DNA of 64,000 bases from positions 310,001-374,000 of IMG/VR virus record IMGVR_UViG_3300049793_000366, one strand, 5' to 3'. Positions 8,824 through 16,075 of this stretch are shown here, one piece after another; within the stretch, counting starts at the first letter, position 1; every line of letters starts with the position of its first letter. Under the pieces are notes generated by a model. That model worked only from the letters and a program-made list of their open reading frames with translations. It searched no databases and had not been told where the DNA came from. Both the position numbers and the translations under genes were made by a program.

Positions 8824-9440
8824 TGATAACTACTGATGATATCTTAACCGAAGATTACCTATTAAAGATTATTAGGGATCCTTCGCTTATAAAAGCTGAT
8901 TGGAGAGATTTAAAACTGAGGTTGATGTTATCAGACATCGACTCTCAGTTAATTCCTGATATAGATAGTATAAGGTATAAACAAGATTCTTTCTTTAAGA
9001 GAGAAGAACACTATTGGAGTATAGCATCGAAAGTTCGTATTGGTATTATAACTGGTTCTCTATCATTGAAAGCATTTGGATTTATCAGCAGAGCGGCTAA
9101 AGATGTTGATATTATAGTAAGTGATAGAGTAAAGGTAAAAGATTTAAATTTGAATCAACATAGATATCCAGAATCAGATAGTGATTTAGAATCATTGGGT
9201 TATATATCATTTACGAAGTCTGGAATCTTCGGTAGTGTTAAGGGAATGTACGAAGTTGACTTCTTCGAGAATAAAAATGCAACGTTCATTGAGAAAGATG
9301 GTTTAAAATTTCATCACCCATTTGAAGTAATGGATAAGAAATTACAAATATTACAGAACAGAGGAACTAGCGATAGAGTTAAAGATATACAGGACTTTTA
9401 TAGCTTTCGTAATGTTTTAAGAAAAAAATATTTAGTCTGA
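8823..9440 (+). CDS. Putative nucleotidyltransferase (Pol beta superfamily)
   Basis: ITGSLSL...KDVDII (GS/DxD motif) and EVDFF. Confidence 0.55.
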   Translation: MITTDDILTEDYLLKIIRDPSLIKADWRDLKLRLMLSDIDSQLIPDIDSIRYKQDSFFKREEHYWSIASKVRIGIITGSLSLKAFGFISRAAKDVDIIVSDRVKVKDLNLNQHRYPESDSDLESLGYISFTKSGIFGSVKGMYEVDFFENKNATFIEKDGLKFHHPFEVMDKKLQILQNRGTSDRVKDIQDFYSFRNVLRKKYLV

Positions 9441-9494
9441 AACCTTTGTGTACAAAGGAAAGTCCAAAAAAGATTGAATAAAATTGAAAATAAA

Positions 9495-9526
9495 TTTGCA
9501 AAACGTATTTTAGTGTTGTATATTTG
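9495..9526 (+). promoter_or_regulatory. Bacteroidota-type promoter (-33 TTTG, -7 TATATTTG) for initiator tRNA
   Basis: TTTG 9495-9498 and TATATTTG 9519-9526. Confidence 0.65.
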
Positions 9527-9611
9527 TACTCAGAAAGAAAAAAATAAAAATTTTATTTTTCTTCATTAAACAACAAAAGGGAGAAATAAAATATAATATA
9601 TATAAACATAT

Positions 9612-9683
9612 TGCGGGATAGAGCAGGGGTAGCTCGCTAGGCTCATAACCTAGAGGTCGGGTGTTCGAATCACCCTCCCGCTA
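9612..9683 (+). tRNA. tRNA-fMet (CAT), initiator-like
   Basis: Cloverleaf; 1:72 mismatch; CTAGG-CTCATAA-CCTAG. Confidence 0.85.
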
Positions 9684-9744
9684 CAAAGAATACAAAAATA
9701 TCAGTCTGGGAATCAGGACTTTAAAAGAAAAAGTAAAATTTTTC

Positions 9745-9775
9745 TTGACAATCTGAAACTTTCACCTTATATTTG
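9745..9775 (+). promoter_or_regulatory. Bacteroidota-type promoter driving the leader peptide/tRNA operon
   Basis: TTGACA at 9745 and TATATTTG at 9768-9775. Confidence 0.65.
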
Positions 9776-9888
9776 CGTAAAAATAAAGAAGTTGTTTACC
9801 TCACAAACATCAGATATAGTACGAGGTCTTGATTGAAAAAACAACTCTTAAGGAATTTAATAACAAAAACTGAATAAATAAAATAGTA

Positions 9889-10020
9889 ATGAAAACTCTA
9901 ACAGTAAATATGAATCTAAATAATACCATGACAACGGTGGTGAATATTACGTTATGTAATATTAGACCGGAATCTGGGTTAGTTCCTATTTGCCTAAAAG
10001 AGAAAGATATCATGCGATAA
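9889..10020 (+). CDS. Attenuator leader peptide, 43 aa (MKTLTVNMNLNNTMTTVVNITLCNIRPESGLVPICLKEKDIMR)
   Basis: Translated by hand; contains the antiterminator segment; composition matches the downstream tRNA set. Confidence 0.75.
   Translation: MKTLTVNMNLNNTMTTVVNITLCNIRPESGLVPICLKEKDIMR
9970..9982 (+). promoter_or_regulatory. Antiterminator segment GAATCTGGGTT(AG)
   Basis: Exact 11-nt copy of the terminator 3' arm, complementary to AACCCAGATTC at 10045-10055. Confidence 0.8.
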
Positions 10021-10043
10021 CTTATTCACAAGCAAAAAGCTCT

Positions 10044-10076
10044 AAACCCAGATTCATAAAGAATCTGGGTTTTTTT
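10044..10076 (+). terminator. Attenuator intrinsic terminator immediately before the tRNA array
   Basis: AAACCCAGATTC-ATAAA-GAATCTGGGTTT followed by TTTT. Confidence 0.9.
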
Positions 10077-10078
10077 AT

Positions 10079-10154
10079 GCCTATATAGTCCAACAAGAGC
10101 AGAGACAGTCGGCTTAAAATCGACACAGTAAGGGTTCGAACCCCTTTATAGGCA
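10079..10154 (+). tRNA. tRNA-Leu (TAA), atypical short variable loop
   Basis: GCCTATA/TATAGGC; GTCGG-CTTAAAA-TCGAC. Confidence 0.75.
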
Positions 10155-10164
10155 CAACATATAA

Positions 10165-10236
10165 GGATCAGTAGCTCAGTGGTAGAGCAAGTGACTGTTA
10201 ATCACTAGGTCGTAGGTTCAAGCCCTACCTGGTCCT
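10165..10236 (+). tRNA. tRNA-Asn (GTT), U73 discriminator
   Basis: AGTGA-CTGTTAA-TCACT; canonical D and T arms. Confidence 0.85.
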
Positions 10237-10244
10237 CAAAAAAT

Positions 10245-10323
10245 AGGTATGTACCGAGCCACACTGATAATGTGGATATTCGTAGCGGTGTTGTAAACGT
10301 GGGTTCAAATCCCACCTTACCTA
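10245..10323 (+). tRNA. D-armless tRNA-Ile (GAT)-like RNA with expanded variable region
   Basis: Acceptor AGGTATG/CTTACCT; only 7 nt before the anticodon arm CCACA-CTGATAA-TGTGG; intact T arm. Confidence 0.6.
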
Positions 10324-10331
10324 CAAAAAAT

Positions 10332-10404
10332 GCCTGAATAGCTCAGTTGGTAGAGCGTCTGATTTGTAATCAGAAGGTCGTCGGTTCGAACCCGGCTTTA
10401 GGCT
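10332..10404 (+). tRNA. tRNA-Thr (TGT)
   Basis: Canonical cloverleaf. Confidence 0.9.
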
Positions 10405-10414
10405 CAAGTTAAAT

Positions 10415-10494
10415 GCCCAGATGGTGGAATGGTAGACACGCTGGTCTAAGAAGCCAGTGCTTTTAGCGTGAGAGTTCAAGTCTCTCTTTGGGTA
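10415..10494 (+). tRNA. tRNA-Leu (AAG)
   Basis: Type II Leu body; CTGGT-CTAAGAA-GCCAG. Confidence 0.85.
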
Positions 10495-10507
10495 CGAAAT
10501 AAAATAT

Positions 10508-10581
10508 GCACTCGTGGTCTAACGGACAAGGGCGAGAGTTTTCTAAACTCTAAGGTGGGGGTTCGATTCCCTCCGAGTGTA
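10508..10581 (+). tRNA. tRNA-Arg (TCT)
   Basis: AGAGT-TTTCTAA-ACTCT. Confidence 0.85.
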
Positions 10582-10588
10582 CAAAAAT

Positions 10589-10677
10589 TGATGATTTGCC
10601 GTAGTTGGCCGAACGGTCCAGACTGTTAATCTGGTGAGCGTTATGCTCCGTCACAGGTTCGAATCCTGTATCATCAG
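10589..10677 (+). tRNA. tRNA-Asn (GTT) with long (type II) variable arm
   Basis: TGATGAT/ATCATCA plus G73; CCAGA-CTGTTAA-TCTGG; variable hairpin GAGC-GTTAT-GCTC. Confidence 0.8.
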
Positions 10678-10682
10678 CAAAT

Positions 10683-10756
10683 AGTCGGGTAGCTCAGTTG
10701 GTTAGAGCGCCACACTGATAATGTGGAGGTCGTGGGTTCAAGTCCCGCTCCGACTA
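10683..10756 (+). tRNA. tRNA-Ile (GAT)
   Basis: Canonical cloverleaf. Confidence 0.9.
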
Positions 10757-10762
10757 CTAAAT

Positions 10763-10845
10763 GACACCATGGCCGAGTGGAGCTGAAAAGCGATAGGCAT
10801 CAGTCTGCAAAACTGATTACGGGGGTTCAAATCCCTCTGGTGTCT
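10763..10845 (+). tRNA. tRNA-Cys (GCA) with hairpin insertion in the D-loop
   Basis: U73; TCAGT-CTGCAAA-ACTGA; GCT-GAAA-AGC insertion. Confidence 0.8.
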
Positions 10846-10926
10846 CAATGGGTTCGGTTTTAGTCCGAATATGATAAGATTACCTGAGGTAGAAATACTA
10901 ATCAAGGGGCACCGAAAGAATTGAAT

Positions 10927-11011
10927 GGTTGGGTGGCGAAATTGGCAGTACGCGGTAGACTTAAAATCTACTGGTTTTAACACCGTGAGGGTTCAAGTCC
11001 CTCCCCGACTA
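10927..11011 (+). tRNA. tRNA-Leu (TAA), canonical type II
   Basis: GTAGA-CTTAAAA-TCTAC with long variable arm. Confidence 0.9.
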
Positions 11012-11018
11012 CAAATGC

Positions 11019-11093
11019 GCCTTCGTAGTCCAAACGCGCAGAGACATACGCCTTAGAAGCGTAGTGTTGTGGGTTCGAATCCCACCGAAGGTA
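11019..11093 (+). tRNA. tRNA-Leu (TAG), atypical short variable loop
   Basis: TACGC-CTTAGAA-GCGTA. Confidence 0.75.
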
Positions 11094-11104
11094 CAAACAT
11101 AAAT

Positions 11105-11176
11105 GCCCTGATGGCGTAACGGCAAGCGTTATTCTTTTACATGGAATAGGTAGTGGTTCGATTCCACTTCGGGGTA
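11105..11176 (+). tRNA. tRNA-Val (TAC), divergent
   Basis: ATTCT-TTTACAT-GGAAT. Confidence 0.7.
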
Positions 11177-11182
11177 CAAAAT

Positions 11183-11257
11183 AGTTGCATAGCTCAGTTG
11201 GTTCAGAGCATCTGCCTTACAAGCAGAGGGTCGTTGGTTCGAATCCAACTGTGACTA
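11183..11257 (+). tRNA. tRNA-Val (TAC)
   Basis: Canonical cloverleaf. Confidence 0.9.
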
Positions 11258-11265
11258 CAAAAAAT

Positions 11266-11338
11266 GCCCGTATGACGTAATCGGCAGTCGTACTTGTCTC
11301 AAAAGCAAGGTGTCTTGGTTCGAATCCAAGTATGGGTA
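11266..11338 (+). tRNA. tRNA-Leu (CAA), atypical short variable loop
   Basis: CTTGT-CTCAAAA-GCAAG. Confidence 0.75.
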
Positions 11339-11341
11339 CTA

Positions 11342-11513
11342 AACCGAAAGAGATATGTAAGGAATGACATATTCTTTCACATCAATGAAGTAATGAAGAA
11401 TATTCGAATAGTTCGGATTTACTTTGAATGTGTGGGGTGATGAGAGTGGTTAAAGACCACAAGGGATGGAAACAGTCCTGATGTTTGACAAAGCTCATCG
11501 TACTCTTTTGGTT
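11342..11513 (+). ncRNA. Multibranched ncRNA of about 170 nt inside the tRNA array
   Basis: Closing helix AACCGAAAGAG/CTCTTTTGGTT; internal stems ATATGT/ACATAT, CACAT/ATGTG, GATGAG/CTCATC, GTGGT/ACCAC. Confidence 0.65.
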
Positions 11514-11517
11514 ATTT

Positions 11518-11591
11518 AGTCACATAGCTCAGTTGGTTAGAGCATTCCCTTGACATGGGAAAGGTCACAGGTTCGAATCCTGTTGCGACTA
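11518..11591 (+). tRNA. tRNA-Val (GAC)
   Basis: TTCCC-TTGACAT-GGGAA. Confidence 0.9.
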
Positions 11592-11617
11592 CAAACATAC
11601 ATGAAGTACAAGTGTAT

Positions 11618-11691
11618 GGCGCAGTAGCTTAACTGGATATAGAGCATCTCTGTTTTAGGAGAAAGGTTTGGGTTCAAATCCCTTCTGTGTA
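11618..11691 (+). pseudogene. Degenerate tRNA (6-nt anticodon loop GTTTTA)
   Basis: D arm and GGTTCAAATCC T-loop retained; imperfect stems. Confidence 0.5.
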
Positions 11692-11699
11692 AAATATTA

Positions 11700-11783
11700 G
11701 CCGATGTGGCTCAGTGGCGACAGCACTTGCCTTGTAAGCAAGTCGTGATAAACGCATCGGGGGTTCGAGTCCCTCCATCGGCT
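11700..11783 (+). tRNA. tRNA-Thr (TGT) with long variable arm
   Basis: CTTGC-CTTGTAA-GCAAG; variable hairpin CGT-GATAA-ACG. Confidence 0.8.
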
Positions 11784-11798
11784 CATAAGAAGTGTAGT

Positions 11799-11871
11799 GC
11801 TGATATAGTTCAGTTGGTAGAACGCATCCTTGGTAGGGATGAGGTGACAGGTTCGATTCCCGTTATCAGCT
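11799..11871 (+). tRNA. tRNA-Thr (GGT)
   Basis: CATCC-TTGGTAG-GGATG. Confidence 0.85.
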
Positions 11872-11883
11872 CAAAGTAAAAAT

Positions 11884-11965
11884 GCCGTTGTGAACAGATG
11901 TGGTAATTGTGTTCGGCTCATATCCGAATTGGAAACTATTGTAGGTTCGAGTCCTACCAGCGGTA
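11884..11965 (+). tRNA. tRNA-Met or Ile2 (CAT) with enlarged variable region
   Basis: TTCGG-CTCATAT-CCGAA; 12-nt variable region. Confidence 0.75.
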
Positions 11966-12004
11966 CTAACAAATAAAAATAAACAAATAAAAAACAAGAA
12001 GACA

Positions 12005-13200
12005 ATGGGAACGAAAATTTAGACCATAAGGAACTCGGAAAGCAATTAAATCTTTTTTGCTTTTCAGAAGATGTGGGTAAGGGTCTACCACTATGGTTAC
12101 CGAAAGGTGCTATAATAAGAGAGGAATTAATTTCTTATCTTAAAAAGATACAACTCAAAATGGGTTATCAAGGAGTAGTAAGTCCACATATAGCAAATGT
12201 TAAGCTATATAAAATATCAGGACACTACGACAAGTATAAGGATCACGCATTTGGAGAGATATGTTGTCCTGGTGAAGAAAGTTATATGCTTAAACCCATG
12301 AACTGCCCTCATCATTGTCAGATTTATAAAAGTGAACCTCGTTCTTATAGAGATTTACCTTTAAGATTTGCTGAGTTTGGACAAGTATATCGGTATGAAG
12401 ATAGTGGTGCTGTTAATGGTTTATTACGAGTGCGAGGATTTTGTCAAGATGATGCTCACTTATTTTGTAGACCTGACCAAGTGAAGGTTGAAATTAACAA
12501 CATAATTAAACTCGTTCTTTATGTACTGAATGAATTTGACTTTAAAGATTTTAAAGCTCAAATATCTCTAAGAGATAGTTCTGATGATAAGTATATTGGG
12601 TCAGATGAAGTTTGGGAACAAGCGGAGTCAGCACTAATAGAAGCGGCTAAAGATAATGGATTAAACTACAATATCGAAAAAGGTGAAGCCGCGTTTTATG
12701 GTCCTAAGATAGACTTCATGGTTAAGGATTGTTTGAATAGAGAATGGCAATTAGGGTCAATACAATTAGACTATAACTTACCAGATAAGTTTGAGTTAGA
12801 ATATATTGATTCGGAAGGGAAGCCGAGTAGACCAGTTATGATTCATAGAGCGCCATTTGGTTCTTTAGAAAGATTTATAGCAATTTTACTCGAACACTAT
12901 CAAGGTAGATTACCATTTTGGTTATCACCAGAACAAGTGATGATTTTACCAATATCAGAAAAGTTTAATGATTTTTCAGATAGTATAAAGTCAAGATTAT
13001 TTGATAGCGATATCAGAGCAGTTGTAGATAGTAGGAATGAAAGATTGCCTAAAAAAATAAAAGATGCTCAATTAAATTATATCCCGTATATGATTGTGAT
13101 TGGTCAGAAAGAAGTAGATAGTGGAATTTTATCAATTCGTTCAAGAGAAGGAAAAGAAGAAAAGATTGATATTGATAGTTTCATTAAAAGTGTAAAATAA
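12005..13200 (+). CDS. thrS: Threonyl-tRNA synthetase lacking the N-terminal editing domain; start apparently needs a -1 frameshift
   Basis: KPMNCPHH, YRYEDSG, RVRGFCQDDAH, AFYGPKID, MIHRAPFGSLERF; conserved DHKELGK begins at 12022, upstream of the first in-frame start (GTG 12073); ATG 12005 is out of frame. Confidence 0.9.
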
Positions 13201-13223
13201 TAATTCCACCGAAAGGTGGATAT

Positions 13224-13296
13224 GCTCTCGTAGTTTAATGGAAAGAATCACACTTTCCTAAAGTGGCGGGTAGGGGTTCGAATCCCTTCGAGAGTA
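13224..13296 (+). tRNA. tRNA-Arg (CCT)
   Basis: GCTCTCG/CGAGAGT; CACT-TTCCTAA-AGTG. Confidence 0.8.
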
Positions 13297-13300
13297 CAAC

Positions 13301-13400
13301 GCCTGGGGAAGCTCTTAGTGGTAGGTAGCACTTCAGTAGCTTATATAACAGTCGGTTATGTGACAGGAAGAGGGTGTCGGTTCAATCCCGACCTTGGGCG
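13301..13400 (+). ncRNA. tRNA-like RNA with the anticodon loop replaced by a long hairpin
   Basis: Acceptor, D and T arms present; CTTC...GAAG encloses TTATATAAC-AGTCG-GTTATGTGA. Confidence 0.6.
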
Positions 13401-13456
13401 CAATAAAAATAGAAGATTAAATAAATTAATGTCTAATAAAAATAAAAATAGAAACA

Positions 13457-14635
13457 ATGAAAGGTTGGATAAAATCAATCAGAGAGTCCAAAGGACTACA
13501 ATTTCTCGCAGTGACGGATGGGCAACATGACCACCAGCTTACAATTAAAACAGGTGAAGCATTCATTGAGGGAAATCCGAAAGTGGGTGCTTCTTTTTTT
13601 GCAGAAGGTTTTGATTCTGTAACGCCAAGAGGTCTACCGGAGTTCGTAGTGACTAAGCTGACAATAGTTGGTGAATCAGATGATACATTTCCGATTCAAC
13701 CTAAGCATCATACGCCTGAGTTCTTAAGAAGTATTCCTGAGTTAAGGGGTAAAGCAAAAGGATTTCAAGCAACATGGAAAATCAGACATCACCTAACACA
13801 AGCGATTCATCGTTTCTTAGAAGATGAAGGTTTCTATCAGTACTACACACCGATAGTTACACACGCTGATTGTGAAGGAGCTGGTGAGACATTTGATGTA
13901 AAGAGTGATTGGATGTCAGAGAAACTAACGGTGTCTGGACAGTTACATGGTGAAGTTGGTATGATGTCTTTAGGAAAGATTTATACATTCTCACCTTGTT
14001 TCAGAGCAGAGAAGTCTTTAACTAAAAAGCACTTATCTGAATTCTGGATGATTGAACCAGAAATTGCGTTCTGTGAATTAGATGAGACAGTTGAATTTGC
14101 CGAGAAATTTGTAAAGTCAATAATTAAATATGTACTCACTAAATCAGAGTATGAATTTAAGCAACTCGGAATCGACCATCAACACCTCGAACCTCTCCTG
14201 GATAAGGATTGGAAGAAAGTAAAATATGATGAAGTATGTGAAACATTTAAGCTCACTTGGGGTCACGATATTTCATCTGAAACGGAAAAAAAGATAGTCG
14301 AGAAATGGGGACCAACATTCGTTACTGAATACCCAGAAGGATTGAAACCCTTCTATATGAAGAAAGATGGTAGAGTAGCAAAATGTTTTGATTTAATTTT
14401 CCCAGAAGTGGGTGAGTTAATCGGAGGGTCACAACGAGAAGAAGACTATGATAAAATAGTTGAGCAAATGACTCAAGCACACTTGGATCTGGATAAGATG
14501 CACTGGTATTTAGCAACACGAAAATGGGGAACAGTTCCACATTCAGGGTTCGGATTAGGTTTTGAACGTTTATTAATGTTCATCACCAAAGCAACTAAAA
14601 TTCACGATGTTATTCCTTTTCCGGTGAGCTATTAA
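13457..14635 (+). CDS. asnS: Asparaginyl-tRNA synthetase
   Basis: OB-fold KGWI, CEGAGETF, LTVSGQL, FRAEKS..KHLSEFWMIEPE, GELIGGSQRE, PHSGFGLGFER. Confidence 0.92.
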   Translation: MKGWIKSIRESKGLQFLAVTDGQHDHQLTIKTGEAFIEGNPKVGASFFAEGFDSVTPRGLPEFVVTKLTIVGESDDTFPIQPKHHTPEFLRSIPELRGKAKGFQATWKIRHHLTQAIHRFLEDEGFYQYYTPIVTHADCEGAGETFDVKSDWMSEKLTVSGQLHGEVGMMSLGKIYTFSPCFRAEKSLTKKHLSEFWMIEPEIAFCELDETVEFAEKFVKSIIKYVLTKSEYEFKQLGIDHQHLEPLLDKDWKKVKYDEVCETFKLTWGHDISSETEKKIVEKWGPTFVTEYPEGLKPFYMKKDGRVAKCFDLIFPEVGELIGGSQREEDYDKIVEQMTQAHLDLDKMHWYLATRKWGTVPHSGFGLGFERLLMFITKATKIHDVIPFPVSY

Positions 14636-14652: not shown

Positions 14653-14919
14653 ATGAATAATATTAATATAACAGAAATAGTAAAGAACGGAAAAACAGAA
14701 TTAACACACGCAGTAGCAGGAGTACTCTATTATAGAACTGATACCAATACACACAGTTATATCTATGTGATTGATATGAATGATAGAGAAGATGTAGGTA
14801 CTGCTACATTCGAAGCAAGGCCAAAAACCTTATATTTGATGCGTTGGATTCGAAAGTCCATAGAGAATAATACAATAATCGTAATTAAAAAGAAATACAA
14901 TGAAACTGAATCTAAATAA
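14653..14919 (+). CDS. Hypothetical phage protein
   Basis: 88-aa ORF in the aaRS operon. Confidence 0.6.
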   Translation: MNNINITEIVKNGKTELTHAVAGVLYYRTDTNTHSYIYVIDMNDREDVGTATFEARPKTLYLMRWIRKSIENNTIIVIKKKYNETESK

Positions 14920-16075
14920 AATAAAAACAACTCCGAAAGGAATGCCCTTTGGCTTCTGTGTGTATGGGAAACCTACACCAGAAGTCCAAGCATGGGCTTC
15001 GCATTGGAATATCAAAGAGCAAGAGTCGGGTCCATATACGAATTTCATCTTACCTGATGGCTTAAGTATCGAAGAGATTTTTGAAGAAGCAAAAACATAT
15101 GAGTGGGTCGATGGTTTTAGTCCAAATTTAAATAAACATTTGCACTTAGGTCACTTATCTAATCTGATTATAGCCAAAGCAATGCAGTCAATGAGTGTAG
15201 GTAAAAACTACATAGCGATATTGGGTGATACGCTGTCTGGTCAGGTTGATAAAACAGATGCCTTGAAGAAGTATAATGAATATTGTCAGAACTTCGGGTA
15301 TAATATCAATCAACTCATTTTCGCCTCAGAACAAAAATTATCAAATGATATTTTAGTTGATGGTGATGGTGAATATACGGGAACGAAAATATTCAATATC
15401 AATGAAGACAAAGTTGTAGGAATTAAAAGCGATGGTTCAACATCCTATTTCTATCAAGATGTCTCACTTGCTCAAAAGTTAAACGCACCAACGTTGTATT
15501 TAACTGGATTTGAACAAGTGGGGCATTTTTCGTTATTGAAACAATTATTCCCGCATATAGAACACATTGGTCTTGGATTGGTAACAGTAGATGGTAAAAA
15601 GATGTCTTCATCTGAGGGTAATGTAATCTTCGCAGAGGATATTTTCAATCAACTACTTGATAAATTTAGTGGTGATGAAAAATTAGTTTGGAATGTAATA
15701 GCTGGGCAAATTTTAAAATCTACACCAAATTCTGTTAAGAATATCGATATGAAGCAAATTGAAAATGTAAAACAATCTGCTGGGTTGTATATCTCTTATA
15801 CGATGGCACGTATGTGGTCAGCGGGTATTGAATACATTGAAACTGATACTATCGAGGATCCTGCTCTTCTTTTTAAATCAATGAAAGCGAAGTTTAACTT
15901 ACAACCGAATATTCTATTCGAAGAGGTAATTGAACATTGTAAGAAAATTAATAACTTATATATAACACACAAAATAAAAGACAACGATGCTAATACAAAA
16001 TTATTTCAATCACTCACCAACGATTTGGTGACAACGACTAAAAAATTAGGATTATTTAAAATAAATAAATTATGA
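14900..16075 (+). CDS. argS: Reduced arginyl-tRNA synthetase (class I)
   Basis: FSPNLNKHLHLGHL (HIGH), KSDGSTSYFYQD, KMSS, GLYISYTMAR; only 391 aa. Confidence 0.8.
   Translation: MKLNLNKIKTTPKGMPFGFCVYGKPTPEVQAWASHWNIKEQESGPYTNFILPDGLSIEEIFEEAKTYEWVDGFSPNLNKHLHLGHLSNLIIAKAMQSMSVGKNYIAILGDTLSGQVDKTDALKKYNEYCQNFGYNINQLIFASEQKLSNDILVDGDGEYTGTKIFNINEDKVVGIKSDGSTSYFYQDVSLAQKLNAPTLYLTGFEQVGHFSLLKQLFPHIEHIGLGLVTVDGKKMSSSEGNVIFAEDIFNQLLDKFSGDEKLVWNVIAGQILKSTPNSVKNIDMKQIENVKQSAGLYISYTMARMWSAGIEYIETDTIEDPALLFKSMKAKFNLQPNILFEEVIEHCKKINNLYITHKIKDNDANTKLFQSLTNDLVTTTKKLGLFKINKL

Follow-up and report, generated by a model that had tools for sequence, protein, structure and literature searches.

How is a gene translated when its reading frame offers no start codon ahead of conserved coding sequence? 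The question is raised by a phage genome of 508 kb that encodes a threonyl-tRNA synthetase (ThrRS, thrS). In the 64,000-nt stretch of DNA analyzed here (the window), the plus-strand ThrRS frame is open from 11983, just past a TAA at 11980–11982, and the conserved segment DHKELGKQLNLF begins at 12022. The first ATG, GTG or TTG of this frame is GTG 12073, with no near-cognate start codon upstream of it. The sole ATG, at 12005, is offset into the +1 frame with respect to ThrRS and reads ATG GGA ACG AAA ATT TAG. An initial annotation had described this arrangement, with all coordinates correct, and had proposed that ribosomes reach the ThrRS frame by a −1 shift at the threonine codon ACG when charged Thr-tRNA is scarce. 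The features of the region are collected in Table 1.

Table 1. Features of the thrS region (positions in the window)
Feature	Position	Strand	Remarks
Phage tRNA-Thr(UGU)	10332..10405	+	ARAGORN and Rfam; reads ACA/ACG
Phage tRNA-Thr(UGU)	11700–11784	+	ARAGORN and Rfam; just 5' of thrS
Phage tRNA-Thr(GGU)	11799–11872	+	ARAGORN and Rfam; just 5' of thrS
tRNA gene ahead of leader	11884–11966		3' end adjoins leader
A-rich untranslated leader	11967..12004	+	From 3' end of tRNA gene to putative start codon
0-frame short ORF, M-G-T-K-I-stop	12005..12022	+	Stop TAG at 12020–12022
Candidate −1 shift site G_GGA_ACG	12007..12013	+	Thr codon ACG at 12011–12013
ThrRS frame after the putative shift	12010..13200	+	Inferred product M-G plus 396 residues
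6-nt spacer	12014..12019	+	From A-site codon to first complementary segment
TAGACC	12020..12025	+	0-frame stop and 5' arm of a possible stimulatory stem
Predicted internal hairpin	12035..12068	+	12035–12042 pairs with 12061–12068; RNAalifold consensus
Synonymous-invariant segment GTG GGT AAR GGT CTA CCA CT	12072..12092	+	Includes GTG 12073
GGTCTA	12082–12087	+	3' arm of the possible stem; complements TAGACC 12020–12025

The identity of the protein is clear from its domains. Pfam searches gave a class II core (tRNA-synt_2b, PF00587, 1.5e-47) followed by an HGTP anticodon-binding domain (PF03129, 7.1e-21), the pair of domains that marks a class IIa ThrRS, and the closest solved structures are ThrRSs (1nyq, E 9.8e-117). 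The TGS and editing/SAD domains (PF02824, PF07973) had no match in the phage ThrRS, whose frame opens just 13 codons ahead of the DHK motif, right after a tRNA gene. TGS and editing domains are dispensable for aminoacylation in truncated E. coli ThrRS, and from the DHK motif on the phage enzyme aligns with crystallized N-truncated E. coli ThrRS (1evk and others). The zinc-ligand columns (Cys of PMNCP, His of DDAH and His of IHRAP) are invariant across phage and cellular sequences; we take these residues to be E. coli C334, H385 and H511, which act in threonine recognition. A catalytic core plus anticodon-binding domain, starting from DH(R/K)xxG, is likewise all that is found in the E. coli delta-N constructs, in ThrRS-cat of Crenarchaeota and in the ThrRSs of other huge phages. 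The present clade differs in how the gene begins. Truncated phage ThrRS genes elsewhere all start at an ordinary in-frame ATG, 1–11 codons before DHR, whereas here such a codon is missing.

A misplaced ATG could simply be an artifact, since in a single sequence a G missing from the GGG run would look identical. We compared the window with 12 further distinct relatives from independent metagenome assemblies (72–91% amino acid identity). The layout was common to 11 of the 12: an A-rich leader, an out-of-frame ATG, G_GRR, a 0-frame Thr codon, a 6-nt spacer and TAG. In the window and these 11 relatives, the ATG, the Thr codon and the TAG occupy matching positions, the Thr codon of the relatives is always ACA or ACG, and their TAG overlaps (C/T)TA-GAC. 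Their leaders occur in two length variants, 6 nt apart. Logan contigs from four runs of four studies had zero indels over 11975–12521, and thus no extra G at the GGG run; in the run that is the probable source, word depth was 23. An offset shared by 11 relatives, together with indel-free contigs, is due neither to chance nor to misassembly. Signs of decay are also absent, with a whole-gene pN/pS of 0.23 at a synonymous divergence of 0.66 and, as noted, invariant zinc-ligand columns. For practical purposes, an assembly error or a decaying pseudogene is refuted. Searches beyond this set added little: a protein-alignment profile scan of metagenomes returned cellular ThrRSs only (55–62% identity), and a scan for the invariant 24-mer pattern gave nothing new in genome_contigs and just the known relative in viral_contigs.

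The twelfth relative (L008) is the only one with an in-frame ATG. It is nested inside the clade and derived, and it has lost the GAC (now GAT), the GTG and GGT-CTA all together, an exception that fits the frameshift reading. In the others, as far as their sequences tell, the main ORF can be reached from the conserved start only via a −1 shift, the arrangement that defines a programmed −1 frameshift.

This conclusion depends on where translation begins. For ATG 12005, the preceding 25 nt are 72% A, similar A-rich leaders stand before the ATG in all relatives, and the context score ranks at the 70th percentile among ORF starts of the genome and at the 99.6th among internal ATG/GTG codons. GTG 12073 scores in the 18th percentile of ORF starts. 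These data point to ATG 12005 as the probable initiation codon of ThrRS. Coding constraint gives a second line of evidence. Over the 17 codons between TAG and GTG, pN/pS was 0.236, versus 0.231 after the GTG, while the other two frames gave 1.7–2.0 and contain stops. Because the upstream codons are constrained like the rest of the gene, they must be translated, and a start at GTG alone therefore fails. The same 17 codons are predicted to form a helix and a strand (pLDDT about 80) and match the N-terminus of crystallized truncated E. coli ThrRS. Gene callers cut these thrS genes short at the GTG or at an internal ATG (P0001–P0017). The GTG, at V18, is invariant despite being a rare Val codon, which is also compatible with an internal start.

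That invariance invites a different explanation, leader-peptide translational attenuation, in which ThrRS would be made from GTG 12073, the short ORF would serve as a leader that senses Thr, and a ribosome stalled at ACG would melt a TAGACC:GGTCTA pairing to expose the GTG. The complementary segments do flank the GTG, which is fixed in frameshift-type relatives though GTG accounts for just 8–14% of Val codons, and L008 lost the GTG and the pairing along with the out-of-frame ATG. The proposal leaves the gene-wide protein constraint upstream of the GTG unexplained, however, and would discard predicted structure that has its counterpart where the catalytic domain begins; it also runs against the poor start context of the GTG and against all other truncated phage ThrRSs, which begin before DHR. 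We judge it improbable. The initial annotation had further mentioned an attenuator upstream, for which we found no support. No terminator-like site lies within 10072–13205, and an Rfam search of 9000–14000 (E up to 0.01) returned tRNA genes only, bar one sub-threshold antisense match over a tRNA gene, with neither a T-box nor another leader among the matches.

Initiation at a non-canonical codon of the ThrRS frame would also make a shift unnecessary. The obvious candidate is an ATT in the longer leader, invariant and in frame 5 nt past the ATG in seven longer-leader relatives and also in L189; bacteria are known to use AUU as a weak start (infC). But in the open part of the ThrRS frame, neither the window nor any of the three other short-leader relatives offers a cognate or near-cognate codon, and it is the out-of-frame ATG that follows the conserved A-rich context. 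In L005 and L014, just 7 codons of open ThrRS frame precede DHK, with zero cognate or near-cognate starts there. A start of this kind seems most improbable. Taken as a whole, the comparison makes it very likely that ThrRS synthesis depends on recoding of some kind between ATG and TAG.

Where might the shift occur? G_GRR_ACR is present in the window and in all 11 frameshift-type relatives, and several observations bear on P-site slippage there. This genome encodes tRNA-Gly(UCC). G_GGA is the P-site half of G_GGA_AAG, which is highly shift-prone in E. coli, and hungry A-site codons promote slippage (PMC5009743). Modulation of −1 frameshifting by tRNA abundance is documented for HIV-1 (PMC6547452). 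Counting against the site, slow A sites are held to weigh more in +1 than in −1 shifts (PMC5009743). The site departs from the X_XXY_YYZ heptamer, in that the P-site half fits and ACG cannot re-pair on AAC. Since re-pairing of ACG in the −1 frame is excluded, a slip here would involve the P site only, with the A site vacant. In three relatives (L003/L188, L015 and L010), the P-site codon is GAG or GAA in place of GGR; re-pairing would be weaker there, as pairing on GGA needs a G-U at the middle position. The shift would fall at codon 2–4, where short peptidyl-tRNAs tend to drop off.

Other places and other codes were considered and rejected. A slip at the 0-frame stop is disfavored by the codon before TAG, which varies (ATT, ATC, AAT, TAC, AGC, GTC, TTT) without consistent −1 re-pairing. 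The initiator tRNA would re-pair poorly after a slip, and the base ahead of the ATG is not constant (A, T or C). Readthrough of TAG in the ATG frame, under an alternative genetic code, reaches a TAA eight codons later, and a change of code is unneeded; long ORFs of the genome end in TAA (207), TAG (17) and TGA (17). The frame could also be restored by RNA polymerase slippage, by RNA editing, or through doublet decoding by a tRNA with a 6-nt anticodon loop (11617–11693). The genome does have tRNA-like genes whose anticodon loops measure 6 nt and 8 nt, and in the window and 6 of the 12 relatives AA stands first in the codon that follows the Thr codon. In five relatives, however, that codon begins with AG or GG, the odd tRNA has mismatched stems and at 29.4 bits barely exceeds the gathering score of 29, and polymerase slippage has zero conserved homopolymer runs between ATG and TAG to act on. 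Such routes are barely credible.

Constraint beyond the amino acid sequence extends downstream of the candidate site. The spacer is 6 nt in every relative, with variable sequence. Beyond it, TAGACC is invariant in 11 sequences; GAC is a minority Asp codon (17%). Synonymous diversity reaches its gene minimum in the segment 12072–12092 (0.134 versus a mean of 0.423); the minimum spans codons 13–26, codons 1–9 form the second-lowest region, and as a block the first ∼26 codons are the least diverse of the gene at synonymous sites. The segment holds a GTGG/CCAC hairpin as well as the GGTCTA arm, so that a pseudoknot is possible. For TAGACC/GGTCTA and GTGG/CCAC, all pairs are standard and 98% of cells are paired; because the proposed pairs never vary, covariation cannot offer proof of them. 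The internal hairpin is a weak candidate by prediction, with 96.6% of cells paired, one-sided changes only and one mismatch in the window. The local fold of the window was no more stable than shuffled sequence (single-sequence, z = −0.79).

The codon content of the gene bears on what the shift might sense. Phage ThrRS has 0 Thr in 396 residues, versus 11–16 in cellular homologues, and the phage clade consistently lacks Thr at seven positions where 15 or 16 of the 16 cellular homologues have it. Relatives do carry a few internal Thr codons, and 12 of these 13 are ACT/ACC. With the ThrRS frame free of Thr codons, the one at the shift site is the only Thr codon that a ribosome meets. This is strong circumstantial support for scarcity of Thr-tRNA as the trigger, as first proposed, and we regard the idea that recoding senses Thr-tRNA as almost evenly balanced. 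The purge reaches further: this genome has at least 14 aminoacyl-tRNA synthetase genes whose products each contain almost none of the cognate amino acid. The other 13 begin at plain in-frame ATGs, with no similar leaders, so that cognate purging alone does not imply a sensor. An Asn-rich ORF upstream of an AsnRS-like gene is common to the closest relative only and is absent from L015.

The plain starts of these cognate-free genes, which need no sensor, agree with an alternative: a constitutive programmed −1 frameshift, whose fixed low efficiency would set the level of ThrRS, with the Thr codon incidental or serving as context only. The comparative evidence for recoding serves this view equally, and it can accommodate the weaker P-site re-pairing of three relatives and the alternative A_AAA_AAT heptamer that L003 carries past the Thr codon. 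Harder to explain would be why a 0-frame Thr codon is kept in the window and 11 relatives, though it requires RAC, which makes up just 17–20% of Asn/Asp codons in these genes (GGR is similarly a minority of Gly codons), and why, in a gene purged of Thr, the translated path has no other Thr codon. We consider a constitutive shift unlikely, if worth keeping in view.

Overall, we somewhat favor programmed −1 frameshifting at G_GGA_ACG, with scarcity of Thr-tRNA as its probable trigger. The retention of G_GRR plus a Thr codon and the constraint upstream of the GTG both support the shift proposed initially. Translation of thrS mRNA would begin at ATG 12005, one base out of register with ThrRS, and a ribosome that does not shift would make only M-G-T-K-I and terminate at TAG 12020. 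Production of ThrRS would need a one-base backward slip before this stop, for which G_GGA_ACG (12007–12013) appears to be the only conserved place. While ACG stays unfilled in the A site, fMet-Gly-tRNA(UCC) on GGA could re-pair on GGG. The next codon would then be AAC, and the product M-G-N-E-N-L-D-H-K..., a 398-residue ThrRS of catalytic and anticodon-binding domains. From 6 nt past the A-site codon, TAGACC/GGTCTA and GTGG/CCAC probably fold and hold the ribosome at the site. Because the shift would need the A site to be vacant at the Thr codon, and no further Thr codon follows in the ORF, output should go up when Thr-tRNA(UGU) is scarce; its recharging by ThrRS would lower output again, giving negative feedback.

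The initial annotation likened this to prfB, the release factor 2 gene, in which a +1 frameshift at a stop codon provides autoregulation by negative feedback. The regulatory logic of that comparison may well stand. In thrS, as in prfB, the main ORF would be entered by an early programmed shift from a short 0-frame ORF ending in a stop, and in thrS too the shift would compete with A-site decoding whose speed depends on the gene's own product. The mechanics do not carry over. In thrS the shift would be −1 and the sensed codon a sense (Thr) codon decoded by charged tRNA, whereas in prfB the protein itself recognises a stop; nor is a Shine–Dalgarno stimulator evident, the leader being A-rich, as is typical of Bacteroidota-type initiation. 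The tail-chaperone G/GT site of phage lambda (G_GGA_AAG) is closer in form, sharing a P-site half that moves from G_GGA to GGG and a 6-nt spacer before a possible structure. Unlike G/GT and other X_XXY_YYZ sites, thrS has an A-site ACG that cannot re-pair, and it would control on/off supply of a single product rather than a fixed ratio of two. Related precedents are hungry-codon shifts (Gallant), the +1 shift that Ty1 makes at a rare Arg codon, and the tRNA-abundance-dependent −1 shift of HIV-1. The bacterial examples stem from laboratory starvation or viral ratio control; in the literature examined, we found no hungry codon cognate to the synthetase being made. Control of thrS itself is known from the translational operator of E. 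coli and from Gram-positive T-box leaders. Like these, the element proposed here would exert feedback on ThrRS synthesis through the state of Thr-tRNA or ThrRS; unlike them, it would lie in the coding region, within its first 90 nt, and act via reading frame.

A literature word search, which is not proof of novelty, returned neither a frameshifted thrS nor avoidance of the cognate residue in phage synthetases. To our knowledge, no other aminoacyl-tRNA synthetase gene is under the control of ribosomal frameshifting. If the proposed mechanism is true, thrS would be the first such gene, and its leader the first natural bacterial-type recoding site whose sensor is a hungry sense codon cognate to the very enzyme it controls, as well as a portable element of ∼100 nt through which the charging of a tRNA would set how much protein is made. 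In practical terms, annotators should note that thrS genes of this kind are mis-started by gene callers. At odds somewhat below even, the thrS leader may be a natural tRNA-charging switch, in which an empty A site at the single Thr codon would turn a dead-end ORF of 5 codons into ThrRS, within a phage that has at least 14 cognate-purged synthetases. Fourteen self-avoiding synthetases and the putative frameshift would point to a phage strategy for translation without specific charged tRNAs. In such a design, tRNA charging could be rebuilt from nothing once the host supply of charged tRNA collapses, be it by defence, by a shut-off that the phage itself imposes, or by failure of host enzymes to recognise phage tRNAs. 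Surveys of huge phages have left open why they carry translation genes (PMC7162821), and the thrS finding bears on that question.

Following a TAA at 11980, the ThrRS frame stays open from position 11983, and its DHK motif begins at 12022. The earliest ATG, GTG or TTG in this frame is the GTG at 12073, and the 13 codons ahead of DHK include no start, not even a near-cognate one. The ATG at 12005 lies in the +1 frame relative to ThrRS and reads ATG GGA ACG AAA ATT TAG; on recheck, all coordinates of the initial annotation were correct. Protein clusters and a viral-contig scan yielded DNA of 12 distinct relatives, and the out-of-frame ATG and Thr codon are kept, in the same frame arrangement, in 11 of them (72–91% amino acid identity). 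Two leader length variants, 6 nt apart, occur among these frameshift-type loci. The short form (window, L004, L005, L014) is ATG GGA ACR, two codons (mostly AAA ATY) and TAG; the long form (L003/L188, L006, L010, L012, L013, L015, L016, L189) is ATG GAA TTG GRR ACA, two variable codons and TAG. L005 and L014 have only seven open ThrRS-frame codons ahead of the motif, none usable as a start. An assembly error in the GGG run, raised as a concern in the initial annotation, can be rejected, as the layout is kept in relatives and the segment 11975–12521 is indel-free in Logan contigs from four runs of four studies (word depth of the probable source contig, 23).

Could the protein simply start at GTG 12073? 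In the 11 frameshift-type sequences, pS was 0.556 and pN 0.131 over the 17 codons that run from the 0-frame TAG to this GTG, a pN/pS of 0.236, against 0.231 for the other ∼380 codons of ThrRS. The 51 nt ahead of the GTG gave ratios of 1.7–2.0 in either other frame, with stops present. The segment is thus translated. Its residues align with the N-terminal start of crystallised N-truncated E. coli ThrRS (1evk and others) and form a helix and a strand in the AlphaFold model (pLDDT ∼80), and truncated phage ThrRS genes of other viral contigs all have an in-frame ATG 1–11 codons ahead of DH(R/K). Given coding constraint, structural homology and these other starts, the GTG 12073 product cannot be the (only) product, and a GTG-only start is rejected. 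There is some room for an internal start at the invariant GTG (V18) beside a frameshift product. A position weight model was built from 359 long-ORF starts of this genome, using the 25 nt ahead of each, where sequence is A-rich, and was scored against internal ATG/GTG sites. Ranked among starts, the context of ATG 12005 reached the 70th percentile and that of GTG 12073 the 18th; among internal sites, they reached the 99.6th and the 86th. The ATG itself is constant among relatives, while the preceding base varies (A, T, C). By these scores, ATG 12005 looks like a normal start site for this genome. In public protein predictions for the clade (P0001–P0017), gene callers place the ThrRS start either on the GTG or on an internal ATG (MGYKG), and the P0004 prediction (452 aa) runs back across a tRNA gene; such misplaced starts leave truncated or chimeric ThrRS in public protein sets.

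The layout is thus best explained by a conserved recoding event near the 5' end of thrS, a reading we hold with good confidence. The likeliest event is a –1 slip at G_GGA_ACG, as the initial annotation proposed. The sole conserved re-pairing feature between ATG and TAG consists of a G, a GGR codon (GAR in three relatives) and the Thr codon ACA/ACG, in that order. A slip at the last sense codon before TAG was also considered and rejected: that codon is variable and its re-pairing inconsistent. The shift would occur at codon 2–4, which counts against the model. The phage lambda G/GT shift site, G_GGA_AAG, has the P-site half G_GGA in common with the site here, whereas re-pairing from ACG to AAC is impossible. 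Further weak points are that the site differs from the canonical tandem-slippage heptamer and that, in three relatives, re-pairing requires a G-U pair at the central base. A tRNA-Gly(UCC), able to decode both GGA and GGG, is encoded in the genome. Since the A-site tRNA cannot re-pair, the slip would have to be made by the P-site tRNA on its own while the A site is empty, the 'hungry codon' situation (PMC5009743); G_GGA_AAG, of which G_GGA is the P-site half, is listed among highly shift-prone sequences in E. coli (PMC5009743). With a Thr codon kept in the 0 frame, Asn or Asp in the ThrRS frame can only be written RAC. This form makes up only 17–20% of Asn/Asp codons in these genes, yet it occupies the site in the window and in 11 of 11 frameshift-type relatives.

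Synonymous diversity reaches its minimum for the whole gene at codons 13–26 (0.134 versus a mean of 0.423), with codons 1–9 next lowest. The invariant letters around the site include complementary segments (see table), whose order would allow a pseudoknot enclosing a small hairpin. Every sequence has standard base pairs at the proposed positions and, as nothing varies, there is no covariation; the fold of the window itself shows no exceptional stability (z = –0.79). Complementarity and synonymous constraint are thus the grounds for this putative RNA structure. L008/L009, nested within the clade in the tree, has an ordinary in-frame ATG and carries GAC to GAT, GTG to GTT and GGT-CTA to GGA-TTA changes, the outcome expected if those letters had served recoding and were then freed.

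Sequence features of the thrS region and cognate-poor synthetase genes (window positions; C1, whole phage genome)
Feature	Position	Remark
tRNA gene array	9612-11966	∼20 genes; thrS region at array end
TAGACC	12020-12025	invariant; begins exactly 6 nt past the Thr codon in every relative
GTGG / CCAC	12073-12076 / 12088-12091	invariant
GGTCTA	12082-12087	invariant; complement of TAGACC
ThrRS	12010-13200	cognate-poor
Class II Asp/Lys/Asn-type synthetase	13457-14635	downstream of ThrRS; cognate-poor
ArgRS-like synthetase	14900-16075	third synthetase gene after tRNA array; cognate-poor
Cognate-poor synthetase genes outside the window	C1: 51775-54003, 386812-387783, 388279-389556, 392810-393916, 394421-396040, 396695-398224, 409122-410324, 415861-416961, 422098-422898, 422899-423768, 424433-425512	

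The ThrRS frame contains no Thr among 396 residues. Counts across a set of 12 phage sequences are 0–4 (none in seven), compared with 11–16 in the matching region of 16 Bacteroidota enzymes. At seven positions, 15 or 16 of those 16 have Thr and the phage clade never does, carrying I, C, Q, L, S or Y/I/F. A ribosome starting at ATG 12005 therefore meets no Thr codon but the one at the shift site. If this codon is decoded, the ribosome would stop at TAG two codons on; if unread, a slip would place AAC in the A site, and the remaining mRNA would need no Thr-tRNA. The leader Thr codon is always ACA/ACG, decoded by tRNA-Thr(UGU), while 12 of 13 internal Thr codons of relatives are ACT/ACC. This arrangement supports, but does not prove, prfB-type feedback, and control by Thr-tRNA availability is plausible, at a confidence close to even. 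The upstream attenuator invoked by the initial annotation found no support: only tRNA genes lie upstream of thrS, with no terminator-like site, T-box or other leader family.

The IMG/VR virus record from which the window comes (507,910 bp, 33% G+C; window at bases 310001–374000) carries 61 tRNA genes, including tRNA-Thr genes (UGU twice, GGU once) just upstream of thrS. The nearest cellular ThrRS enzymes are from Bacteroidota (59–64% identity) and branch as sister to the phage clade in the tree. Several tRNA loci are unusual. Several called tRNAs are unusually long (10589–10678, 90 nt; 11700–11784, 85 nt; 11884–11966, 83 nt). A tRNA-like gene with a Lys-like TTTT core (11617–11693) forms its anticodon stem-loop only with a 6-nt or 8-nt loop, has acceptor and T stem mismatches, scores 29.4 bits against Rfam tRNA (gathering score 29), and has indels in a relative from run X2. 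Between tRNA-Arg(CCT) and the AsnRS-like gene, a tRNA-like sequence (13298–13405) with GGTTCAATCCC and acceptor-like ends drew no ARAGORN call or Rfam match and may hold an insertion or intron. Elsewhere, a well-formed tRNA at C1:407698–407772 has an 8-nt anticodon loop (ARAGORN four-base anticodon ggaa), an architecture that would fit a +1 frameshift-suppressor tRNA, and one at C1:121630–121702 has the amber suppressor anticodon CUA (ARAGORN label Pyl). Most long ORFs genome-wide nevertheless end in TAA (207), fewer in TAG (17) or TGA (17). A conserved ORF of 88–91 aa, matching no Pfam family, adjoins synthetase genes, ahead of ArgRS in the window (14653–14919) and ahead of ThrRS in L003 (2700–2972).

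Every ORF in the genome with 200 aa or more was scanned for near-absence of one amino acid. Observed/expected counts were Ile 0/58, Val 0/30, Lys 1/33, Asp 0/29, Asn 1/27, Thr 0/22, Phe 0/18, Tyr 0/17, Gln 1/16, Gly 1/16, Ala 0/12, Pro 0/11 and Arg 1/13, and Pfam puts each depleted ORF in a synthetase family covering the matching specificity. The phage genome thus has at least 14 aminoacyl-tRNA synthetase genes that are nearly without their own cognate residue; the ORF at C1:386812–387783, a putative member of this set, has one Phe and two Tyr. The other cognate-poor genes begin with ordinary in-frame ATGs, so thrS alone among them has the frameshift leader. Near the AsnRS-like gene, an out-of-frame upstream ORF (13429–13530) overlaps the gene start, with Asn at five of its first ten codons (MSNKNKNRNN...); it is present in the closest relative, L004, and absent from L015, and could arise by chance from the A-rich leader alone. 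ThrRS enzymes of the unrelated huge phages L163 and L165 have one Thr each. Literature word searches found no report of cognate-residue depletion in phage synthetases, and the main huge-phage survey mentions only that up to 15 synthetases are carried (PMC7162821). Avoidance of the cognate residue may be the more general discovery.
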